In this document: piece by piece, positions 51,703 through 58,834 of the stretch
Numbering within the stretch: position 1 is the first letter of the stretch
How the letters are laid out: each line of letters starts with the position of its first letter
DNA from: Rebecca billardiae RCC1528
Lineage: Eukaryota; Protista; Haptophyta
DNA length: 64,000 bases
Reading direction: 5' to 3'
NCBI GenBank assembly: GCA_965240325.2
Contig: OZ251224.1
Location: 1,674,001-1,738,000 of the forward strand
Translations under genes and position numbers: made by a program
Notes under the pieces: model-generated
Told to the model about the DNA's origin: nothing
Databases searched by the model: none
What the model saw: only the letters and a program-made list of their open reading frames with translations

Positions 51703-53508
51703 CTACGTGCCGAGCGACAGTCCGAGCGTGGTCTGCGCCCACTCGACCACTTGCGCGCACAGCGGGTGCGCGCGGCCGTGCGTGTGCCGCATCCCCTCGT
51801 ACGCCGCGCTGGCGTGCCGCGCGGCCTCCGCCGGCTGGTCGCAGACTGCGCTCAGCTTGGCGAGCACGAACTGGTGCACGGCCGCGTTCGCGCTGTGTGC
51901 GCCGTACGCGAGGGCGCACGCCGCCTCGTTGGCGCGCGCGTGCGCAAACGCGTCGGCCCAGCGGCCGCGCTCGATCAGCGCGGTCGTGAGCGCCGTGCGC
52001 GCACGCAGCAGCCACGCATTGCCCGGCGCGCGCAGCACGCGCGCCCACTCGGCCACAGCCGCCTGCGCGCGCTCCACCGCCGCATCGGCCGCCGCGCCGC
52101 CGCCGCGCGCGAAGCCCTCCAGCTCCCGCGCGGCCTGCTGCGCGCCGAGCCGCGCAGCACGCGCGCGCTCGAGCTCTCGCGCGGAGATGCGGCAGCCGCG
52201 CGCGCACTCGAGCGGCGGCGGGCCCGCGCCGCGAGCGCCGAGCGCCCGGCCGTCGTCGAGCCACGCGCCGCCGCACGCCGAGCACGCAAAGGCGGCGAGC
52301 GCGCGCTCGTGCGAGCTGGCTTCGGCCGAGTCGGCGCAGCGAGCGCAGGTGCACTCGAAGCTGTAGCCGTTGCGCAGCGCGAGGCGGCGCTCGTCGCGCG
52401 GCGCGGCGAGGTCGATGTAGCTGATCGTGAGCTCCTCGCCCGCGCCGAGCCGCCGGAGCGCGCGCACCACCATCACCGGCCCCTCAAACATCTGCACCGC
52501 GCTCGGCGCGCACGCGTGGTTCGCGAGCGCCGCCAGCGGGTAGACCCCCGTGCCGCGCGGCTGCAGCTCGCCGTCGTACAGGGTGTGCGCGTTGGCGCGG
52601 AAGCGCGCGAGCAGCGCGAGCAGCGCGTCGGGCGGCGTCGGCCGCCCCGCGCGCTGGAGCAGCTGCGCCGTCAGCGCCGCCACCGCGCCCATCTCTGACA
52701 GCCGATCAGCCGGCAGCTCCGAGGGCGCGGGGCAGTGCAGCGCGAGAACGGCCGAGTGCGCGCGTGGCCACGCGCCAGCCTCGGGGGCGCGCGCCGCCTC
52801 GGACGCGGCGGGCGCGGCCGCCGGCGCCGCGCCGGGCGCATCCCCGCGCGCCGCGCGTGCGAGCTCCACGCACTGCGCGAGCAGCAGCATCGTCGGCGTG
52901 GGCGTGCGCGGCGCTGCGGCGCGGAAGAGGGAGCACTCAGCCGCGTGGCCGCGCTGCCGCCACGCGAGTCGCTGGTGCGCCTTGCAGCAGTAGCGCGCGT
53001 ACTTGCAGCCCGAGCAGCGGTGGAGCTCGGTGCACTCACGCGGCGCGAGGCACACGTGGCAGAACGCGTCGGCCACCTCCGCGCTCAGCGCGAGCGCCGC
53101 CGCGTCGGCGCGCAGCATGACATCACCGCGCTCAAACCCGGCGACGGCCACGAGCCCTCGGCCGCGCGGCGCGCCATAGTCGACAGCGTCGAGCCCGAAC
53201 GGGCGGAGTAGCGCGCGCCACGTGTCCAGCGCCGCGCGCTCCTCCGGCTCCGCTGCGCGCGGCGGCGGCGCGCCGAACGAGGTGCGCGAGGCCGTCACGC
53301 GCTGCGACGCCAGCACGCCCTCCACCCACGCGGCCTCGCGCTCGGTGCGCGCCTCCTCCGCGCGCTCCTCGGCGAGCATGCGCGCCTCCTCGCGATCAAG
53401 CTCCTCGAATGTGTAGCCCGAGCCCGGCTCCCCGTCATCGTCCGAGTCGAGGTCCTCGCCGAGGTCCAAGCCCGCCAGGGGCTCGACGGTCGTGGGCGCG
53501 GCCACCAT
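51703..53508 (-). CDS. SMYD-family SET/MYND lysine methyltransferase
   Basis: RGRGLVA, MYND finger CHVC...CSGC..ARYC.KAHQR.AW..GH..EC, NHACAP, GEELTISYID and F.C.C.RC post-SET. Confidence 0.92.
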   Translation of the reverse strand: MVAAPTTVEPLAGLDLGEDLDSDDDGEPGSGYTFEELDREEARMLAEERAEEARTEREAAWVEGVLASQRVTASRTSFGAPPPRAAEPEERAALDTWRALLRPFGLDAVDYGAPRGRGLVAVAGFERGDVMLRADAAALALSAEVADAFCHVCLAPRECTELHRCSGCKYARYCCKAHQRLAWRQRGHAAECSLFRAAAPRTPTPTMLLLAQCVELARAARGDAPGAAPAAAPAASEAARAPEAGAWPRAHSAVLALHCPAPSELPADRLSEMGAVAALTAQLLQRAGRPTPPDALLALLARFRANAHTLYDGELQPRGTGVYPLAALANHACAPSAVQMFEGPVMVVRALRRLGAGEELTISYIDLAAPRDERRLALRNGYSFECTCARCADSAEASSHERALAAFACSACGGAWLDDGRALGARGAGPPPLECARGCRISARELERARAARLGAQQAARELEGFARGGGAAADAAVERAQAAVAEWARVLRAPGNAWLLRARTALTTALIERGRWADAFAHARANEAACALAYGAHSANAAVHQFVLAKLSAVCDQPAEAARHASAAYEGMRHTHGRAHPLCAQVVEWAQTTLGLSLGT

Positions 53509-53555
53509 CGTGCGGCCGAACGGCTGGGACTCTGGGAGCCCAGACGGCGCGAGCC

Positions 53556-56500
53556 ATGGGGGTGCGCCGACGAGTCGCGGCGCTCGCGGCGGCGCTCGCG
53601 TGCGCCGCGGTGGGCGCGCACCCCGAGCGGCCCGACGCGCCGACGTGGTGCGATGCGACCACCACCGGGGCGCTCGTCTCCTGGCGGCGGCCGAGCGTGC
53701 CGCCTGGCGAGCCCGCGGCGCATGCGTTTGAGCTGCACCGTCGCGACGGCGTGACCGGCAGGTGGGAGCCGGTGTACAGCGGCCCGGCGTTCTCGCTGCG
53801 CGAGGGCGGCCTGCGGCCGGGGACGACGTACCACTACCGCGTGCAGGCGATCAGCGCGCGCGGGCGCAGCGCCTTCAGCGAGGTCGCCGCGCTGCACTGC
53901 GAGCAGGTGGGCGTGGACCCGCAGTCGATGGGCGACGTGCGCAGCGTCGACCACAACGCGGACGGCGTGATCGACAGCACGGAGCTGCGCGACATGATCG
54001 CGGAGGAGATGAGCGACCTCTCCGCGCCCACCCTCGAGCTCGGCCTCCGCTCCGCGCTGAGCAACGTCGACTCGAACGTCGACGGCCTCCTCACCGCCGA
54101 GGAGCTCGACAGCTACCGCAACCAGCTCGGCTCGACGCTCACGGTCGAGGAGGTGGCGGACTGGGTGGCGCACGCGGTGCGGCTGCCGCAGTACGCGGCG
54201 GTGTTCCGCGAGAACGCCGTCTCGGGCTACGAGTTCCGCGGCCTCCTCGAGCACGGCGGCTCGATGCTGCGCGAGGAGCTCGGGATCGAGAACCGGCTGC
54301 ATCGGCGGCAGCTGATGCGCGCGATGACGATGCGCCTCTTCGGGATCGGCTCGGTGCCGAAGCGGCCGGCGGCGCCGAGGTGGAGCGAGCCGAGCCTCGA
54401 CGGGGGCGTGGTGACGTGGGAGCCGCCGCCCGACTCGGAGGTCCACGCCTACCGCCTGCAGCGCAACGACGGCATCGGGATGGCGTGGCACACCGTGTAC
54501 GAGGGCGAGCGCACCTCGATCGCAGACGCTGGTCTCAGGCCGCACGTTACGTACCAGTACCGCGTGCTGGCGTGGAACGCGCTCGGGCGCAGCGAGTACA
54601 GCGAGTCGGTGGCGGCGCACTGCCGCGCGACGAGCGCCGCCGCGCAGGCGCTCGGCGACGTGCGCAAGGCCGACGGCAACCGCGACGGCGTGCTCGACCG
54701 CGCCGAGCTGCGCGAGCTCGTCAAGGACGTTGTTGCGGACGGGCGCGAGGACGACGTGCAGCAGCAGCTCACGAGCGCGCTGCACAACGTGGACCGCAAC
54801 GTGGACGGGCTGCTCACGGCGGAGGAGCTCGACTCGTACCGCATGCGCCTCGGCTCCGCCCTCACCGTCGACGAGGTCGCCGACTGGATCGCGCACGCCG
54901 TGCAGCTGCCGCAGTACGCGCACGCGTTCAGAGAGAACGCCATCGTCGGCCACGACTTCCGCGGGCTGCTCGAGGCGAACGGCGAGCTGCTGCAGGAGGA
55001 GCTCGGGATCGACTCGAAGCTGCACCGGCGGCAGATCACGCGCGCGATGAGCATGCGCGTGTACGGCATGGGCGAGCCCCCGACCGCGCCCGCGCGGCCG
55101 AGCGCGCGGCTCACGAGCAGCCACGAGGTGCTCGTCACGTGGCGCACGCCGGCCGACGACCCGGCGCCGCACGTGCACAAGTTCCGCGTGCAGAGGCGTG
55201 AGGGGCGGCGCGGCGAGTGGCACAACGTGTACGACGGCCCAGCGCGCTCGATGATCGACATCGTCGACGCGCACACCGGCGGCCGCCTCGAGTACCGCGT
55301 GCAGGCGTGGAACCTGATCGGCGGGTCGCCGTACTCGGCGGAGGTGCGGCTGTCGACCGCCAGCACGGTGTACTGGCTCCTGTCGTGGCTCATGTCGCTC
55401 TCGACGCTCGGGGTGGTGGCGTGGCAGGTGCCCGCGGTGCAGCTGTGGGCGTACACGTTCTGCGCGCGCGTGTGGGCCGCGTACAAGGACCTCCCGCTCC
55501 CGCAGTCGCCGCGCACGCCCGACGTCCCCGCGTACATCCGCGGGCTCGCGCCGGCGGCGCGCCGCACGGCCAACCGCGCGGCGAACGCCTCCACCGCCTC
55601 GCTCGGCGCGATCCTGAGCTCCGCGTCCGCCGCGGCGGTGGCGGCGATGCCCTTCAGCCGGCGTGGCGCGAGGCAGCCGCGGCAGTCCAGGCCGTCCAGA
55701 CCGTCGGCGGCCGCGGCTGCAGCGGCCGCCGCGGCCGCGGCCGCGGCCGCCGCATCGGCGTTGGACCCTCTCGCCACGCCTGGCCCCACGCTGGCCGGCG
55801 GCGCGCCGCAGCCCCTGGCAGAGGACGGCCGCGCGTGGGACACGCCCGGCGCGGGCAAGCTCGCGCCCGCGACGGACTCGACGAAGAGCTCGAAGACCTC
55901 GCACTGGCGCGTGCTGCAGGACTCCCTCCGCTCGCACGGCGCGGACGCCTCGACCTCGCTCAACGCGCAGCTCAAGCGCGTCTCTGCCGCCCTCACGCCC
56001 TCAGGCTCTGAGCACGAGGCCCTCGCCGCGCTGCCGGAGCGCCACTACACGCCCATCGGCGAGAGCCCGCTCGCGGGGAGCTTCGGGGCGAGCTCGCGGC
56101 TTGGCCCGGCCGTGCGGCACATCGACGGCCTCGTGCCTGGGCTCGTGCCGCGCAGCGCGCCGCCCGTCACCACGTCGCACTCCGCGTCGGAGATGATGTC
56201 GCCGCTGCGCCCGCCGCCGCGCATGCCCGCGCCGCGCGCGGCGGCGGCGCCGGAGCCGCGGGTCGCGTGGTCACACTCCGTGTCCGACCTCGCGGTGAAG
56301 GCGGCGGCGGCGACGTTGAAGAGCCTCGACAGCGTGCGCTCGGTCGCCGTGCCGACCACGGTGCCTCAGGTGGGCGAGGACGACATCAACAACATCGACC
56401 AGTGCTACCTGTGCCACCGCTCTGTCGGCTCACTCTTCCGCATCCGGCACATCTGCAAGGTGTGTCGGCGCATCTTCTGCGCGGACTGTGGGCACACGCC

Positions 56501-56735
56501 GCACCCGTTCCCGAGCGTCATCTGCACGGACCGGTGCATCTGCCGGCACCACCTCGAGCAGTCGGGCGTCGTGCTGCCGGAGCGCAAGGGGAGGCGCGCG
56601 GCTTGGCCCGGTGGCAACGCCACCAACGGCTCGACGAGCGCGAGCGCTGCCGTCAGCAGCGACAGCAGACATGACGGCGCGGGTCCTGCGCCGTCCTTCT
56701 CTTGGCCGAGCTTCCCGTTTTCCAGCAGCAAGTAA
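53556..56735 (+). CDS. STIM-like membrane protein: signal peptide-(FN3-EF-EF-SAM)x2-FN3-TM-low complexity-FYVE-like zinc finger
   Basis: FN3 (LRPGTTYHYRVQA), four EF loops, SAM (TVEEVADWVAHAVRLPQY...HRRQL...LFG), TM at about 55365-55460 and CxxC...RHICKVC..IFCADC. Confidence 0.85.
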   Translation: MGVRRRVAALAAALACAAVGAHPERPDAPTWCDATTTGALVSWRRPSVPPGEPAAHAFELHRRDGVTGRWEPVYSGPAFSLREGGLRPGTTYHYRVQAISARGRSAFSEVAALHCEQVGVDPQSMGDVRSVDHNADGVIDSTELRDMIAEEMSDLSAPTLELGLRSALSNVDSNVDGLLTAEELDSYRNQLGSTLTVEEVADWVAHAVRLPQYAAVFRENAVSGYEFRGLLEHGGSMLREELGIENRLHRRQLMRAMTMRLFGIGSVPKRPAAPRWSEPSLDGGVVTWEPPPDSEVHAYRLQRNDGIGMAWHTVYEGERTSIADAGLRPHVTYQYRVLAWNALGRSEYSESVAAHCRATSAAAQALGDVRKADGNRDGVLDRAELRELVKDVVADGREDDVQQQLTSALHNVDRNVDGLLTAEELDSYRMRLGSALTVDEVADWIAHAVQLPQYAHAFRENAIVGHDFRGLLEANGELLQEELGIDSKLHRRQITRAMSMRVYGMGEPPTAPARPSARLTSSHEVLVTWRTPADDPAPHVHKFRVQRREGRRGEWHNVYDGPARSMIDIVDAHTGGRLEYRVQAWNLIGGSPYSAEVRLSTASTVYWLLSWLMSLSTLGVVAWQVPAVQLWAYTFCARVWAAYKDLPLPQSPRTPDVPAYIRGLAPAARRTANRAANASTASLGAILSSASAAAVAAMPFSRRGARQPRQSRPSRPSAAAAAAAAAAAAAAAASALDPLATPGPTLAGGAPQPLAEDGRAWDTPGAGKLAPATDSTKSSKTSHWRVLQDSLRSHGADASTSLNAQLKRVSAALTPSGSEHEALAALPERHYTPIGESPLAGSFGASSRLGPAVRHIDGLVPGLVPRSAPPVTTSHSASEMMSPLRPPPRMPAPRAAAAPEPRVAWSHSVSDLAVKAAAATLKSLDSVRSVAVPTTVPQVGEDDINNIDQCYLCHRSVGSLFRIRHICKVCRRIFCADCGHTPHPFPSVICTDRCICRHHLEQSGVVLPERKGRRAAWPGGNATNGSTSASAAVSSDSRHDGAGPAPSFSWPSFPFSSSK

Positions 56736-56972: not shown

Positions 56973-58615
56973 TCACGGCGGCTGACCCTGCTGCGGGGTG
57001 GCCTCCGCGAACCAGCGCTTGATGGCATCGACCTCGGCGCGACGCACAGCGCGCACCGCGGGAGGGTCCTTGTCGTGTGAGAAGAAGAGGTCGATGTGGT
57101 GCCCGACGCCAGGGATGACGTGCGCGCGCACGCTCTCGGACACGTTGCGCGTGACTCCGCCGCCTCGCCAGGGGTCCAGCTCGCCGTTGGAGAAGAAGAG
57201 GTTGGAGGCGGACTCGAGGGCCGCCCAGCCGCCGTAATACACCACCGGCCACTCCGGCCGCGGCCGCACGCGCCATCGGATCTGGCACCCAGCGGTCGTG
57301 GCCGTGAGGTTGAACGACTGCGGCCAGAACATGTCGGCCACGCCGTCGCGGCTCGCAGGCTGGAGCATGTCCGAGCAGAAGAGGTAGTCCCACAGCTCGC
57401 CGTCGATCGTGGTCTCGTTGTTCCCCGTGACAGAGAGGTCGAAGCAGCCGGCAGCCGCGGCCGGGCTGTCCGTGTAATTGTAGAAGACCGACGCACCGTC
57501 GCGCAGCGCGGCGAGCAGCGCGCCGCGTGCGCCGCTGGCGGCGCTTGCCTCGATGCGACGGCACGCCTCGCGCATCGGGAACGGGGGCAGCGACCCCTGG
57601 CCGTTGAGCATGTATGACGAGGCGTACGGGAAGCTGCCCATCGCCATGAAGTCGAAGGCTGACTGGATCCAGAACGCCTGCGCACACGCAGACAGACGGT
57701 CGGGGCCGGCGCGGCTCAGCGGCAGCTGGGGCAGGCAGCGCAACGCGGGCCAGGGCGCGTGCTGCACGCCCGCTGGATCGCGCGCGCAAGCGCAAGCTAG
57801 CGCACCAGTTGCTCGACATGATCGGAGGAGAGGAGCTTGGAGTCCGGGCACAGCCGGAAGAGGCGGAAGAGGCGCGCGCGACCGGCTTCGGTGCGGCCGA
57901 CGTCGAAAAGCTCGCGCCATGCGCTGCGAATGTGCGCGGCACAACTATCAGTTGCACCGCCCGCGGCGCTGGCGTCATACGTGACAGATGCGCCGAAGCT
58001 GCCGACCTCGTACGGCGGGTCGAGACCAAGAAACGACAGGATGGGCGCGCTCGCCGCCAGCGCGCCGTCGATGGCGGACGGGTACTTGATGCGCAGCCAG
58101 CTCGCCAGCATCCCGCCGTACGACCCGCCGAGCGCGGCCGCGGGGCGGCGCGAGTGCGGCGGTCCGCGCAAGAAGTGCAGGAGCTGCGCGAAGTCGGCGA
58201 GCGCCTGCTCGGAGCTCAGAAACTCCATGTGGCGGCGGAGCGTGGCTCGAGCGAACGGCATCGACTTGCCAAAGTAACGATGCTCCGCCCACACGAGCGC
58301 CGCGCCCAGCTCGTCCGCGTGCTCCCACATCAGCCCCGTCGCGTTCACGTACAGCTCGACATCCGCCTCGTTGCCGGCGTAGAAGAGGATGGGCGCGCCC
58401 TCGGAGCGAGCGAGGAGGTCCGTCCGGCATACGATATACCGCTGCTTCCACACGAGCCCTTGCCCTGGAGGCCGCCTGGGTGCAAAGTGGTCAACGGGCT
58501 GGTCGAAGAAGCGCTCGTCGCAAGTGCTCCGCATGTGCGGCGGCAATGGCGAATCCCAGCGCGAGATGTGGGGAAGAAGCGCAGTGGCAATGTGCGCCGC
58601 GACGACTGCGAGCAT
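56973..58615 (-). CDS. PRCP: Lysosomal Pro-X carboxypeptidase (peptidase S28); intron 57678-57805
   Basis: FDQPVDHF, PILFYAGNE, AEHRYFGKSMPF, GGSYGGML, FSNGELDPW and HHIDL. Confidence 0.93.
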
Positions 58616-58834
58616 CGTCGAGGTCGTGAGGCGGCAGAGGCCGTGATCGTTCACGATCGTCGGGCTCGAGTACGCTCACGGCCCCGGCCGGCCTCGGCGC
58701 GAGATCGCGGCCGAGGGAGTCCGGGCCGGGGGGGCGCCCGCCGGATCCGCGAACCGTTCGAAAAATAATGGCGGCGACTTCTTCCAGCCTCATCAGGAGG
58801 GGGGCTCGCTTGTAGTCGGCTGGCTAGGAGCGCG

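Follow-up and report, generated by a model that had tools for sequence, protein, structure and literature searches.

In animals and choanoflagellates, store-operated Ca2+ entry relies on STIM1 and STIM2 as its ER Ca2+ sensors; outside the family described here, the EF-SAM cassette is known from the STIM proteins of animals alone. Both STIM itself and the use of SAM domains in Ca2+-store sensing are said to have arisen at the root of the animals or close to it (PMC7016017). In diatoms, green algae and early plants, Orai is reported to be present with no STIM beside it, and it has therefore been held that sensing of the store must fall to 'a different protein' (PMC11085791); a 'STIM-1 homolog' from Phytophthora was dismissed, as it had the SAM motif alone in common (PMC4820453). 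Here, we describe a protein of the haptophyte Rebecca billardiae RCC1528 that is the Pavlovales member of a wide, unnamed EF-SAM/FN3/TM/FYVE family in haptophytes and stramenopiles. What is new is a complete STIM-type EF-SAM cassette, with a predicted STIM-like topology, across this broad family.

The window is a 64,000 nt stretch of contig OZ251224.1 (positions 1,674,001 to 1,738,000), and all positions below are counted from its first letter. On the forward strand, a reading frame is open over 53409-56735, and an ATG at 53556 starts a predicted protein of 1059 amino acids. From N- to C-terminus, it is laid out as a signal peptide, FN3, EF-SAM, FN3, EF-SAM, FN3, one TM segment, a P/A/S-rich tail of about 320 residues and a Cys/His finger, with all domains in one frame and collinear with the orthologues, in keeping with the intronless ORF of the initial annotation. 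The features are as follows.

53556-56735, + strand: complete ORF of the double EF-SAM/FN3/TM/FYVE-like protein, 1059 aa plus stop, collinear with orthologues P0001 and P0002
53556-53618, + strand: predicted signal peptide MGVRRRVAALAAALACAAVGA, read from the sequence, with equivalent hydrophobic N-termini in orthologues and many family members
53622-53906, + strand: FN3 domain 1 (residues 23-117), from Pfam fn3 and our own FN3 HMM
53916-54350, + strand: EF-SAM module 1 (residues 121-265), from PDB phmmer, AF2, Foldseek and Atlas
53949-53984 and 54069-54104, + strand: EF loops of module 1
about 54138-54341, + strand: SAM of module 1
54357-54629, + strand: FN3 domain 2 (residues 268-358), from Pfam fn3 and our own FN3 HMM
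54636-55076, + strand: EF-SAM module 2 (residues 361-507), from Pfam and comparison with module 1
55080-55364, + strand: FN3 domain 3 (residues 509-603), membrane-proximal, from Pfam fn3 and our own FN3 HMM
55362-55430, + strand: single predicted TM segment (residues about 603-625), from hydropathy, at the same position in orthologues
55431-56387, + strand: predicted cytosolic tail, rich in P/A/S/G/T, poly-Ala at 55704-55760
56388-56555, + strand: C-terminal FYVE-type zinc finger (residues 945-1000; Cys-rich 950-996), from profiles, AF2 and the family alignment

The signal peptide, tandem modules, third FN3, TM segment and Cys-rich finger had all been noted in the initial annotation, and each was recovered by Pfam, hydropathy or orthologue collinearity. 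In particular, Pfam finds fn3 (PF00041) in three stretches (E 7e-21, 74.7 bits against a gathering cutoff of 25), SAM_2 in two stretches (SAM PF07647/PF00536; E 5e-17, 62.3 bits against 20.5), and EF-hand pairs above threshold. NCBIfam also gave a match to a XopAW-like EF-hand effector of bacteria (30 bits, cutoff 120), which was set aside as generic to EF-hands. The two EF-SAM modules are 61% identical and form sister clades within Pavlovales.

Overall, the gene product is a type I membrane protein by predicted topology: the N-terminal signal-like segment, the FN3 domains, the single TM segment and the finger on its far side would place the EF-SAM modules on the luminal or extracellular face. 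The predicted signal peptide was read from the sequence itself; its hydrophobic stretch runs straight into the first FN3, likewise in the Diacronema and CCMP2436 orthologues. The TM segment is moderately hydrophobic (KD 1.47), which counts against the mechanism proposed below, whereas the collinear segments of the orthologues are stronger (KD 1.65 and 1.96). A TM segment placed by the hydropathy script at the poly-Ala run (residue 718) was rejected in favor of residues 603-625, which are collinear with the TM segment of the orthologues.

By profile ranking and fold, the EF-SAM cassette is homologous to that of STIM. When module 1 was searched as a single sequence against the PDB with phmmer, STIM2 (E 1.6e-7) and STIM1 (3e-6) were the sole full-length matches. 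A profile of the full EF-SAM was swamped by calmodulins because canonical EF-hands dominate its score, and SAM-only profiles were therefore used; one built from 9 sequences has STIM1 at the top (8e-11), and one built from 85 sequences ranks STIM2 (2e-14), STIM1 (1e-13) and C. elegans STIM (5e-12) above other SAM families, so that the grouping of the SAM, on which the initial annotation had staked its reading, falls with STIM in both profiles. HMMER alignments to 2k60 and 2l5y bear out the claimed resemblance to the STIM1 SAM. The AF2 model of the module is confident (pLDDT 90, pTM 0.82), and the comparison with STIM EF-SAM proposed earlier favors the same kinship: among about 350,000 chains, Foldseek returns whole-domain matches to STIM EF-SAMs alone (6pw7, TM 0.74; 2l5y, 0.71; 2k60, 0.61), the next best having a TM of at most 0.43, although this fold match is not fully independent because AF2 was trained on STIM structures. 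In the Atlas shape search, the whole module is matched only by an oomycete cluster from within the family (TM 0.82) and by two clusters of genuine STIM proteins (TM 0.79); a feature search on the EF-SAM part gives one sub-threshold lead (score 0.83). A word-index search with the full-length family alignment returned four proteins, with no named taxa and no STIM.

It could instead be that an EF pair and a SAM were joined apart from STIM, making the likeness convergent and the cassette a generic Ca2+-binding scaffold without a switch. The STIM EF-hand model PF25578 scores 13 bits in the window protein, under its gathering cutoff of 32.2, and only 6 of 84 family modules match it at E<0.01 (best E 1.5e-5); the EF part by itself resembles calmodulin; and Liprin and Shank SAMs follow fairly close behind STIM in the profile ranking. 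Such an origin is nevertheless very unlikely in our judgment, considering that the three solved STIM SAMs come first with two different profiles, that the packing of the EF pair against the SAM matches STIM uniquely among the chains searched, and that STIM and the family agree in EF-to-SAM spacing and in a signature of the C-terminal helix, HR..(L/I)...(A/I)...(L)(F/L)G.

Homology of the cassette does not extend to orthology of the protein. Common to both are a signal peptide, an EF pair and a SAM in one compact fold, a type I topology with a single pass through the membrane (predicted for the algal protein) and a long cytosolic region with a membrane-binding element at its end (putative in the algal protein). 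However, the algal protein has two EF-SAM cassettes where STIM has one; FN3 domains flank each cassette, with one separating the last SAM from the TM segment, whereas the STIM TM segment follows its SAM directly; and a FYVE-type finger occupies the position of CC1-SOAR/CAD (PF16533) and the polybasic tail. Further, STIM pairs a canonical EF with a hidden one, whereas the loops of the algal modules are canonical in both EFs. As the initial annotation had it, all four loops in the window protein (DHNADGVIDSTE, DSNVDGLLTAEE, DGNRDGVLDRAE and DRNVDGLLTAEE) match the canonical pattern. Their Ca-ligand columns are conserved family-wide, position 12 being E in EF1 and D or E in EF2 in all 84 modules. 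Lacking SOAR/CAD, with two canonical loops in each module, an FN3 interposed ahead of the TM segment and a PF25578 score under the threshold, the window protein is not a STIM orthologue.

The architecture is not the one-off that it had first appeared to be. About 66 of the best 150 representatives (50% identity) belong to the family, which includes haptophytes, a diatom (Ditylum), a pelagophyte and a labyrinthulomycete, and probably oomycetes too. All members are annotated as hypothetical, and a search of the literature found no published description of an EF-SAM/FN3/TM/FYVE family. The single-module form is the commoner one, module doubling having occurred repeatedly. Other output domains were considered for members in which a regular expression found no finger, and were mostly rejected, as inspection shows variant fingers in most of them; in P0062 alone, which is truncated, the beginning of a kinase is seen.

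The ectodomain would also suit a cell-surface receptor, facing outward to sense external Ca2+ or bearing a structural or adhesive EF-SAM, whose finger sorts it to endosomes after internalization. It combines a signal peptide with three copies of FN3, a fold typical of extracellular proteins, and one more usual in cell-surface proteins than in the ER lumen, which counts against a store sensor; an ER-retention motif is not visible at the C-terminus of the window protein; and the two canonical, probably high-affinity EF loops of each module would stay saturated outside, fitting a structural role. Even so, such a receptor seems unlikely: elsewhere, the one known role of the EF-SAM is that of a luminal sensor switched by Ca2+, an EF-hand sensor facing outward would be uninformative in seawater (about 10 mM Ca2+), and marine and non-marine lineages alike have kept the cassette with its Ca ligands.

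On the cytosolic side, the output machinery of STIM is missing. Neither the window protein nor the 14 other family members scanned have a Pfam match to SOAR/CAD (PF16533), the window tail has no Pfam match of any other kind, and in the tails of the family, which are rich in P/G/S/A/T, the longest stretch free of Pro and Gly has a median of about 26 residues; the absence of an Orai-activating coiled coil, already suspected, is thereby upheld, the tail having no room for a long one. Across the family, the TM segment lies a median of 170 residues from the end of the last SAM, beyond the intervening FN3. Tail sequences are weakly conserved across the family, with the finger near-universal, and the window protein and Diacronema share just short blocks: RVWAAYKD(L/I)PLP (juxtamembrane), SHW.VLQ..LRS, LK.VSA.LTPS and LKSLDS. 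Such blocks, conserved between Pavlovales species, leave room for a functional STIM analogue in which a short tail motif, or the finger, binds and opens Orai-like channels encoded in the same genome, which would close the algal 'Orai without STIM' gap. Beyond the animals, Orai is widely distributed, with an expansion in the haptophyte Emiliania (PMC7016017), and workers on diatoms state that some sensor not yet known must take the place of STIM (PMC11085791). We regard direct gating as quite unlikely, however, with no SOAR/CAD match or long helical stretch in the tails, with conservation concentrated in the finger rather than the tail, and with the family probably present in oomycetes, in nine genomes of which no Orai was found (PMC4820453).

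By sequence profile, the finger is a divergent FYVE-type domain. Its Cys/His residues are C950, C953, C967, C970, C975, C978, C990, C994, C996 and H999, and all eight Zn-ligand positions of a CxxC cross-brace are present (C950/C953, C967/C970, C975/C978, C994 or C996, and H999), in columns that are invariant or nearly so across 26 members. The window copy matches FYVE (PF01363) at E 0.011 in the whole protein and 0.0011 as an excised piece (16.3-19.5 bits, below the cutoff of 27.8), whereas 20 of the 26 family fingers match at E<0.01 and one member, P0061, exceeds the threshold with 29.1 bits. Against the PDB, the top nine matches of the family finger profile are all FYVE domains (Vps27, 9e-7). 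The AF2 model of the finger is of moderate confidence (pLDDT 72.5), and its top 11 Foldseek matches are FYVE or FYVE-related (E 7e-3 to 0.1, TM about 0.5). The window finger also resembles the FYVE_2 fingers of Rabphilin-3A/Slp type, with a weak PF02318 match and 1zbd as its best single-sequence PDB match (E 0.005). Fingers of that type bind protein partners (Rab GTPases) instead of PI3P, and a lipid pocket that has degenerated could be in line with this; in contrast, the family profile prefers true FYVE domains, and the flanking Rab-binding helices are not evident.

Similar to the FYVE effectors of PI3P (EEA1, Hrs/Vps27, RUFY1 and ALFY), the algal protein has a cross-braced Cys-rich finger with an (R/K)(R/K)HHC-like motif adjoining the second Cys pair. 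The PI3P-binding motifs WxxD, R(R/K)HHCR and RVC are nevertheless not intact in the window copy: it has no upstream Trp, RIRHICK replaces RRHHCR with one extra residue and loss of the second His, and C-I-C replaces R-V-C. PI3P binding by this copy is doubtful because WxxD, the second His and the RVC Arg are missing. The initial annotation had called the finger FYVE-like with a degenerate basic patch; the family profile confirms its type, and the degeneracy is greater in the window copy than in the family, whose consensus KR.[RK]HHC.RC is nearer to a working FYVE domain, still without the RVC Arg, which is Cys family-wide. Further His and Cys residues, invariant in the family and foreign to FYVE effectors, suggest an additional metal site.

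The reading that we prefer, with belief and doubt about evenly balanced, is an EF-SAM Ca2+-store sensor that tethers a membrane or partner through its clustered FYVE-type fingers rather than gating Orai. As in STIM, the Ca2+-loaded EF-SAM would be compact and monomeric; a drop of Ca2+ in the compartment facing the ectodomain, most likely an endomembrane store, would open it and let it self-associate. Clustering would gather several weak C-terminal fingers, whose combined avidity could capture either a membrane carrying anionic lipid (PI3P-type) or a protein partner across a tether of 200-320 residues, and the Ca2+ state of the store would be turned into membrane contact or recruitment. A lone FYVE domain has weak affinity for PI3P membranes and depends on dimerization (EEA1, 2xFYVE probes), and STIM1, once oligomerized, binds the plasma membrane through its polybasic tail with greater avidity. 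By analogy with protrudin/ZFYVE27, an ER-anchored FYVE tether, the membrane-anchored algal protein could reach another membrane. Some difficulties arise: with two canonical loops, the Ca2+ affinity might be too high for reporting store or extracellular Ca2+, and the passage of luminal clustering to the tail is hard to see because an FN3 sits between SAM and TM. Tethering over Orai gating has some indirect support in the family's probable presence in oomycetes, from which Orai is reported to be absent (PMC4820453).

As a concrete, clonable set of proteins, the family is a candidate for the missing store sensor, and its diatom orthologues (Ditylum) bring the question into a group with genetically tractable species. 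The same sensor with a different output, a FYVE finger in place of SOAR, is a natural experiment that bears on STIM evolution, and it supplies parts for engineered Ca2+-responsive membrane tethers. More speculatively, and with doubt outweighing confidence, the EF-SAM sensor could be an older eukaryotic module rather than an animal invention, and the family a haptophyte and stramenopile sensor of store Ca2+ that couples depletion to PI3P-type contacts by FYVE avidity and might also drive Ca2+ entry where Orai is present. The family may, in short, be the missing calcium-store sensor of algae and water moulds.

The sensor gene occupies an open frame at 53409-56735 on the forward strand of the window, and translation from the ATG at 53556, the start chosen in the initial annotation, yields a product of 1059 aa. 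Its N-terminus combines a short basic stretch with a hydrophobic segment (MGVRRRVAALAAALACAAVGA), directly followed by an FN3 domain; the two closest relatives begin in the same way. Pfam matches above the curated thresholds comprise fn3 in three stretches (E 7e-21), SAM_2 in two stretches (E 5e-17) and EF-hand pairs, while a regular-expression check places canonical 12-residue EF loops at residues 132, 172, 373 and 413. One moderately hydrophobic segment (residues ~603-625) is the candidate transmembrane (TM) segment, and the clearer TM segments of the orthologues fall at the same place. It is followed by a Pro/Ala/Ser-rich tail of ~320 residues with a poly-Ala run and then by a Cys/His cluster (950-999). 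The poly-Ala run (window 55704-55760, ~19 Ala), in the cytosolic tail, scores as hydrophobic and mimics a TM segment in simple hydropathy scans. The ORF and domain order read initially from the sequence are thus confirmed, as is the canonical form of all four EF loops. Because the G+C content of the window is high (58-78%), spurious long ORFs are common in it; the domain matches and collinear orthologues identify the sensor frame as the coding frame. We infer both that the gene is intronless and that it starts exactly at 53556. The adjacent genes are:

51703-53508, reverse strand: SMYD-like gene (SET domain split by a MYND finger), oriented head-to-head to the sensor gene
56973-58654, reverse strand: serine carboxypeptidase S28 (prolylcarboxypeptidase-like) gene, in two overlapping ORFs of different frames
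57797-58654, reverse strand: N-terminal half of the S28 gene
56973-57944, reverse strand: C-terminal half of the S28 gene

The first ATG of the SMYD-like gene is 48 bp from the sensor ATG at 53556, and the upstream in-frame ATG of the sensor ORF (53409) overlaps the SMYD-like gene; either the two genes must have a very compact divergent promoter in common, or one start must be wrong. The division of the S28 gene between overlapping ORFs of different frames suggests a short intron.

The EF-SAM cassette is supported as STIM-type by sequence profiles and a predicted structure. Searched against all PDB sequences, module 1 (residues 121-265) matched the EF-SAM domains of STIM2 (2l5y, E 1.6e-7) and STIM1 (2k60, E 3e-6), the only matches covering both the EF-hands and the SAM domain; calmodulins matched the EF half only. 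Since canonical EF-hands dominate any full-length profile, the SAM part was tested alone. A SAM-only profile of 9 sequences ranked STIM1 first (8e-11) and STIM2 second, and with a family-wide profile of 85 sequences the three best matches were STIM2 (2e-14), STIM1 (1e-13) and C. elegans STIM (5e-12); liprin, Shank, ANKS1B, DGK-delta, SARM1, Eph and other SAM families came lower. Further, an alignment of 84 sequences gave a confident AlphaFold2 model of module 1 (pLDDT 90, pTM 0.82), which was compared with ~350,000 PDB chains using Foldseek. The only whole-domain matches were STIM EF-SAM structures (6pw7, TM 0.74; 2l5y, 0.71; 2k60, 0.61), a fold match not fully independent of the STIM structures, which were part of AlphaFold2 training; the remaining matches (TM ≤0.43) covered one half only. 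In the ESM Atlas, the whole module was matched by shape in an Oomycota cluster with fn3 and SAM (TM 0.82) and in two genuine STIM clusters, which carry SOAR and PF25578 (TM 0.79); all others have TM ≤0.54. Clustering of the SAM domain with non-STIM SAMs was therefore not observed, as STIM came first in the SAM profiles.

The C-terminal finger is a divergent FYVE-type domain, as its profile, PF01363 and Foldseek matches together indicate. Taken singly, the window finger scores 16-19.5 bits against Pfam FYVE (threshold 27.8), is also below threshold for FYVE_2, and has the rabphilin-3A and EEA1 fingers as its best PDB matches (E about 0.005). Aligned with 25 relatives (alignment A5), it shows invariant Cys/His columns and the family motif C..C-(8-10)-KR.[RK]HHC.RC...FC(H/x)K(H/C)G.TTH......C....C.C..C. 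The nine best PDB matches of the family profile are all FYVE domains, including Vps27 (9e-7), ALFY, EEA1, Hrs, RUFY1 and LM5-1; 20 of the 26 fingers match PF01363 at E<0.01, one of which (family member P0061, 29.1 bits) passes the threshold. The AlphaFold2 model of the finger is only moderate (pLDDT 72.5), and its top Foldseek matches are FYVE or FYVE-related with weak E-values. The signature for PI3P binding is only partly kept: no WxxD is present, and Cys replaces the Arg of RVC in all members. The basic patch, initially described as degenerate, is indeed so (RIRHICK, versus KR.RHHC.R in most of the family), and this degeneracy is specific to the Pavlovales copies. Beyond the eight FYVE-type ligands, A5 contains further invariant or near-invariant His/Cys positions (..TTH.., a Cys ~5 residues on, and the Cys replacing the RVC Arg), and 'FC..C' reads 'FCHKH' in most fingers; these extra residues may form a third metal site, and hence define a distinct FYVE subtype.

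The STIM CC1-SOAR unit is helical and >200 residues long. No SOAR/CAD was found in the window protein or in 14 other scanned family members. Across 38 complete members, the TM-to-finger stretch measures about 185 residues (median), is rich in P/G/S/A/T, and has a longest Pro/Gly-free run of about 26 residues (median; maximum 68), which by a crude measure is too short for such a unit. The lack of a SOAR/CAD coiled coil noted initially is borne out by these runs and by the absence of SOAR matches. Between the window and Diacronema proteins, conservation of the tail is limited to short blocks. The window protein and STIM have in common the sensor cassette and, by predicted topology, the overall plan, in which the membrane separates the sensor from a long tail that ends in a membrane-binding element. 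Unlike STIM, the window protein has no SOAR/CAD and no hidden EF-hand, its TM segment is not adjacent to the SAM domain, and it does not reach the STIM-specific EF-hand model PF25578. As it lacks STIM's defining output features, it is not filed as STIM; the comparison supports a STIM-type sensor that would be wired to a different effector.

The initial reading of a STIM-like Ca2+ sensor with a FYVE-like tail is supported within the limits of sequence and structure prediction; signalling by tethering rather than by gating Orai is its proposed, about as likely as not, mode of action. By analogy with STIM, Ca2+ loss from EF-SAM would uncover hydrophobic surfaces, and the modules would then self-associate in the lumen or outside the cell; that the protein instead acts as a cell-surface receptor is unlikely. 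Monomeric FYVE domains, as established for EEA1 and tandem-FYVE probes, bind membranes weakly and depend on multimerisation, so that clustering of the tails would switch on finger binding to a PI3P-type membrane or a partner, at distances of as much as a few tens of nanometres from the membrane in which the protein is anchored. The outcome would be a Ca2+-regulated contact or recruitment, and two cassettes in series might provide sharper cooperativity or intramolecular pairing. Against this mechanism stand the Ca2+ affinity, probably high with two canonical loops, the FN3 domain that separates the sensor from the membrane, and the degenerate lipid pocket of the window finger. A convergent shuffle of these domains, without any switch, is highly improbable.

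The window protein is one of a family, so far unrecognised and phylogenetically broad, whose members have a STIM-type sensor, which widens the reach of the finding beyond one odd gene. The orthologues found by a word-index search are KFE25_008743 of Diacronema lutheri, 985 aa long and with the same full layout, and a partial protein of Pavlovales sp. CCMP2436; ectodomain identity is about 62% for both. Two distant proteins of the same plan were also found. When the EF-SAM profile was run exhaustively with HMMER, 131 representatives of clusters at 50% identity had E<1e-30. Among the top 150, about 66 match over the entire cassette, and about 17-18 representatives have two EF-SAM modules. A script analysis detected an FN3-like stretch after the SAM domain in 62 of 70 family proteins. 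Most family proteins have a TM segment ~170 residues past SAM and a C-terminal finger; members missed by the finger regular expression had mostly variant fingers on inspection. Source annotations read 'hypothetical protein', 'Ca2+-binding EF-hand superfamily protein' or 'Calmodulin'. Named members are:

Haptophytes: Diacronema lutheri, Pavlovales sp. CCMP2436
Diatom: Ditylum brightwellii
Pelagophyte: Pelagophyceae sp. CCMP2097 (KAJ1461264.1)
Labyrinthulomycete: Mucochytrium quahogii
Oomycota: one cluster, probable membership by fold (ESM Atlas)

A quick ML tree built from 84 modules has the first and second modules of Pavlovales as sister clades (SH-aLRT 93), indicating a duplication in a Pavlovales ancestor; other double-module lineages have different histories, and module doubling is therefore recurrent. 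The N-terminal FN3 is an extra found in Pavlovales proteins. The Ca-ligand columns are kept family-wide in both EF loops. In one double-module clade (members P0014, P0015, P0016, P0021 and P0026), both modules fail the strict canonical EF-loop pattern and keep the position-12 Glu/Asp; as variants they may have low affinity or be independent of Ca2+. A truncated JGI metagenome protein (P0062) has EF-SAM, FN3 and TM followed by the start of a protein kinase (PF00069, E 2.8e-5, residues 538-592) and no finger, a layout that hints at coupling of the sensor to other outputs.

The Oomycota cluster contains 70 proteins of about 565 aa (fn3 96%, SAM_2 91%), auto-named 'Calmodulin', and is probably the P. 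infestans 'STIM-1 homolog' dismissed in a 2016 oomycete Ca2+ survey because it 'just shared a SAM motif'; neither Orai nor STIM was found in nine oomycete genomes (PMC4820453; both repeated in PMC9694693). This bears on whether the family truly activates Orai through an unrecognised motif, for which the published Orai expansion in the haptophyte Emiliania (PMC7016017) speaks. However, the family is probably present in Orai-less oomycetes, which argues against Orai gating as its core function; such an activator is quite unlikely. No description of the EF-SAM/FN3/TM/FYVE architecture was found in a literature search with limited coverage of subscription journals. According to comparative studies, both STIM and the use of its SAM domain in store sensing arose near the base of animals (PMC7016017). 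Overall, interest in the family is high because it runs counter to this view that the EF-SAM sensor arose in the animal lineage, and because it opens the 'Orai without STIM' question to direct test.
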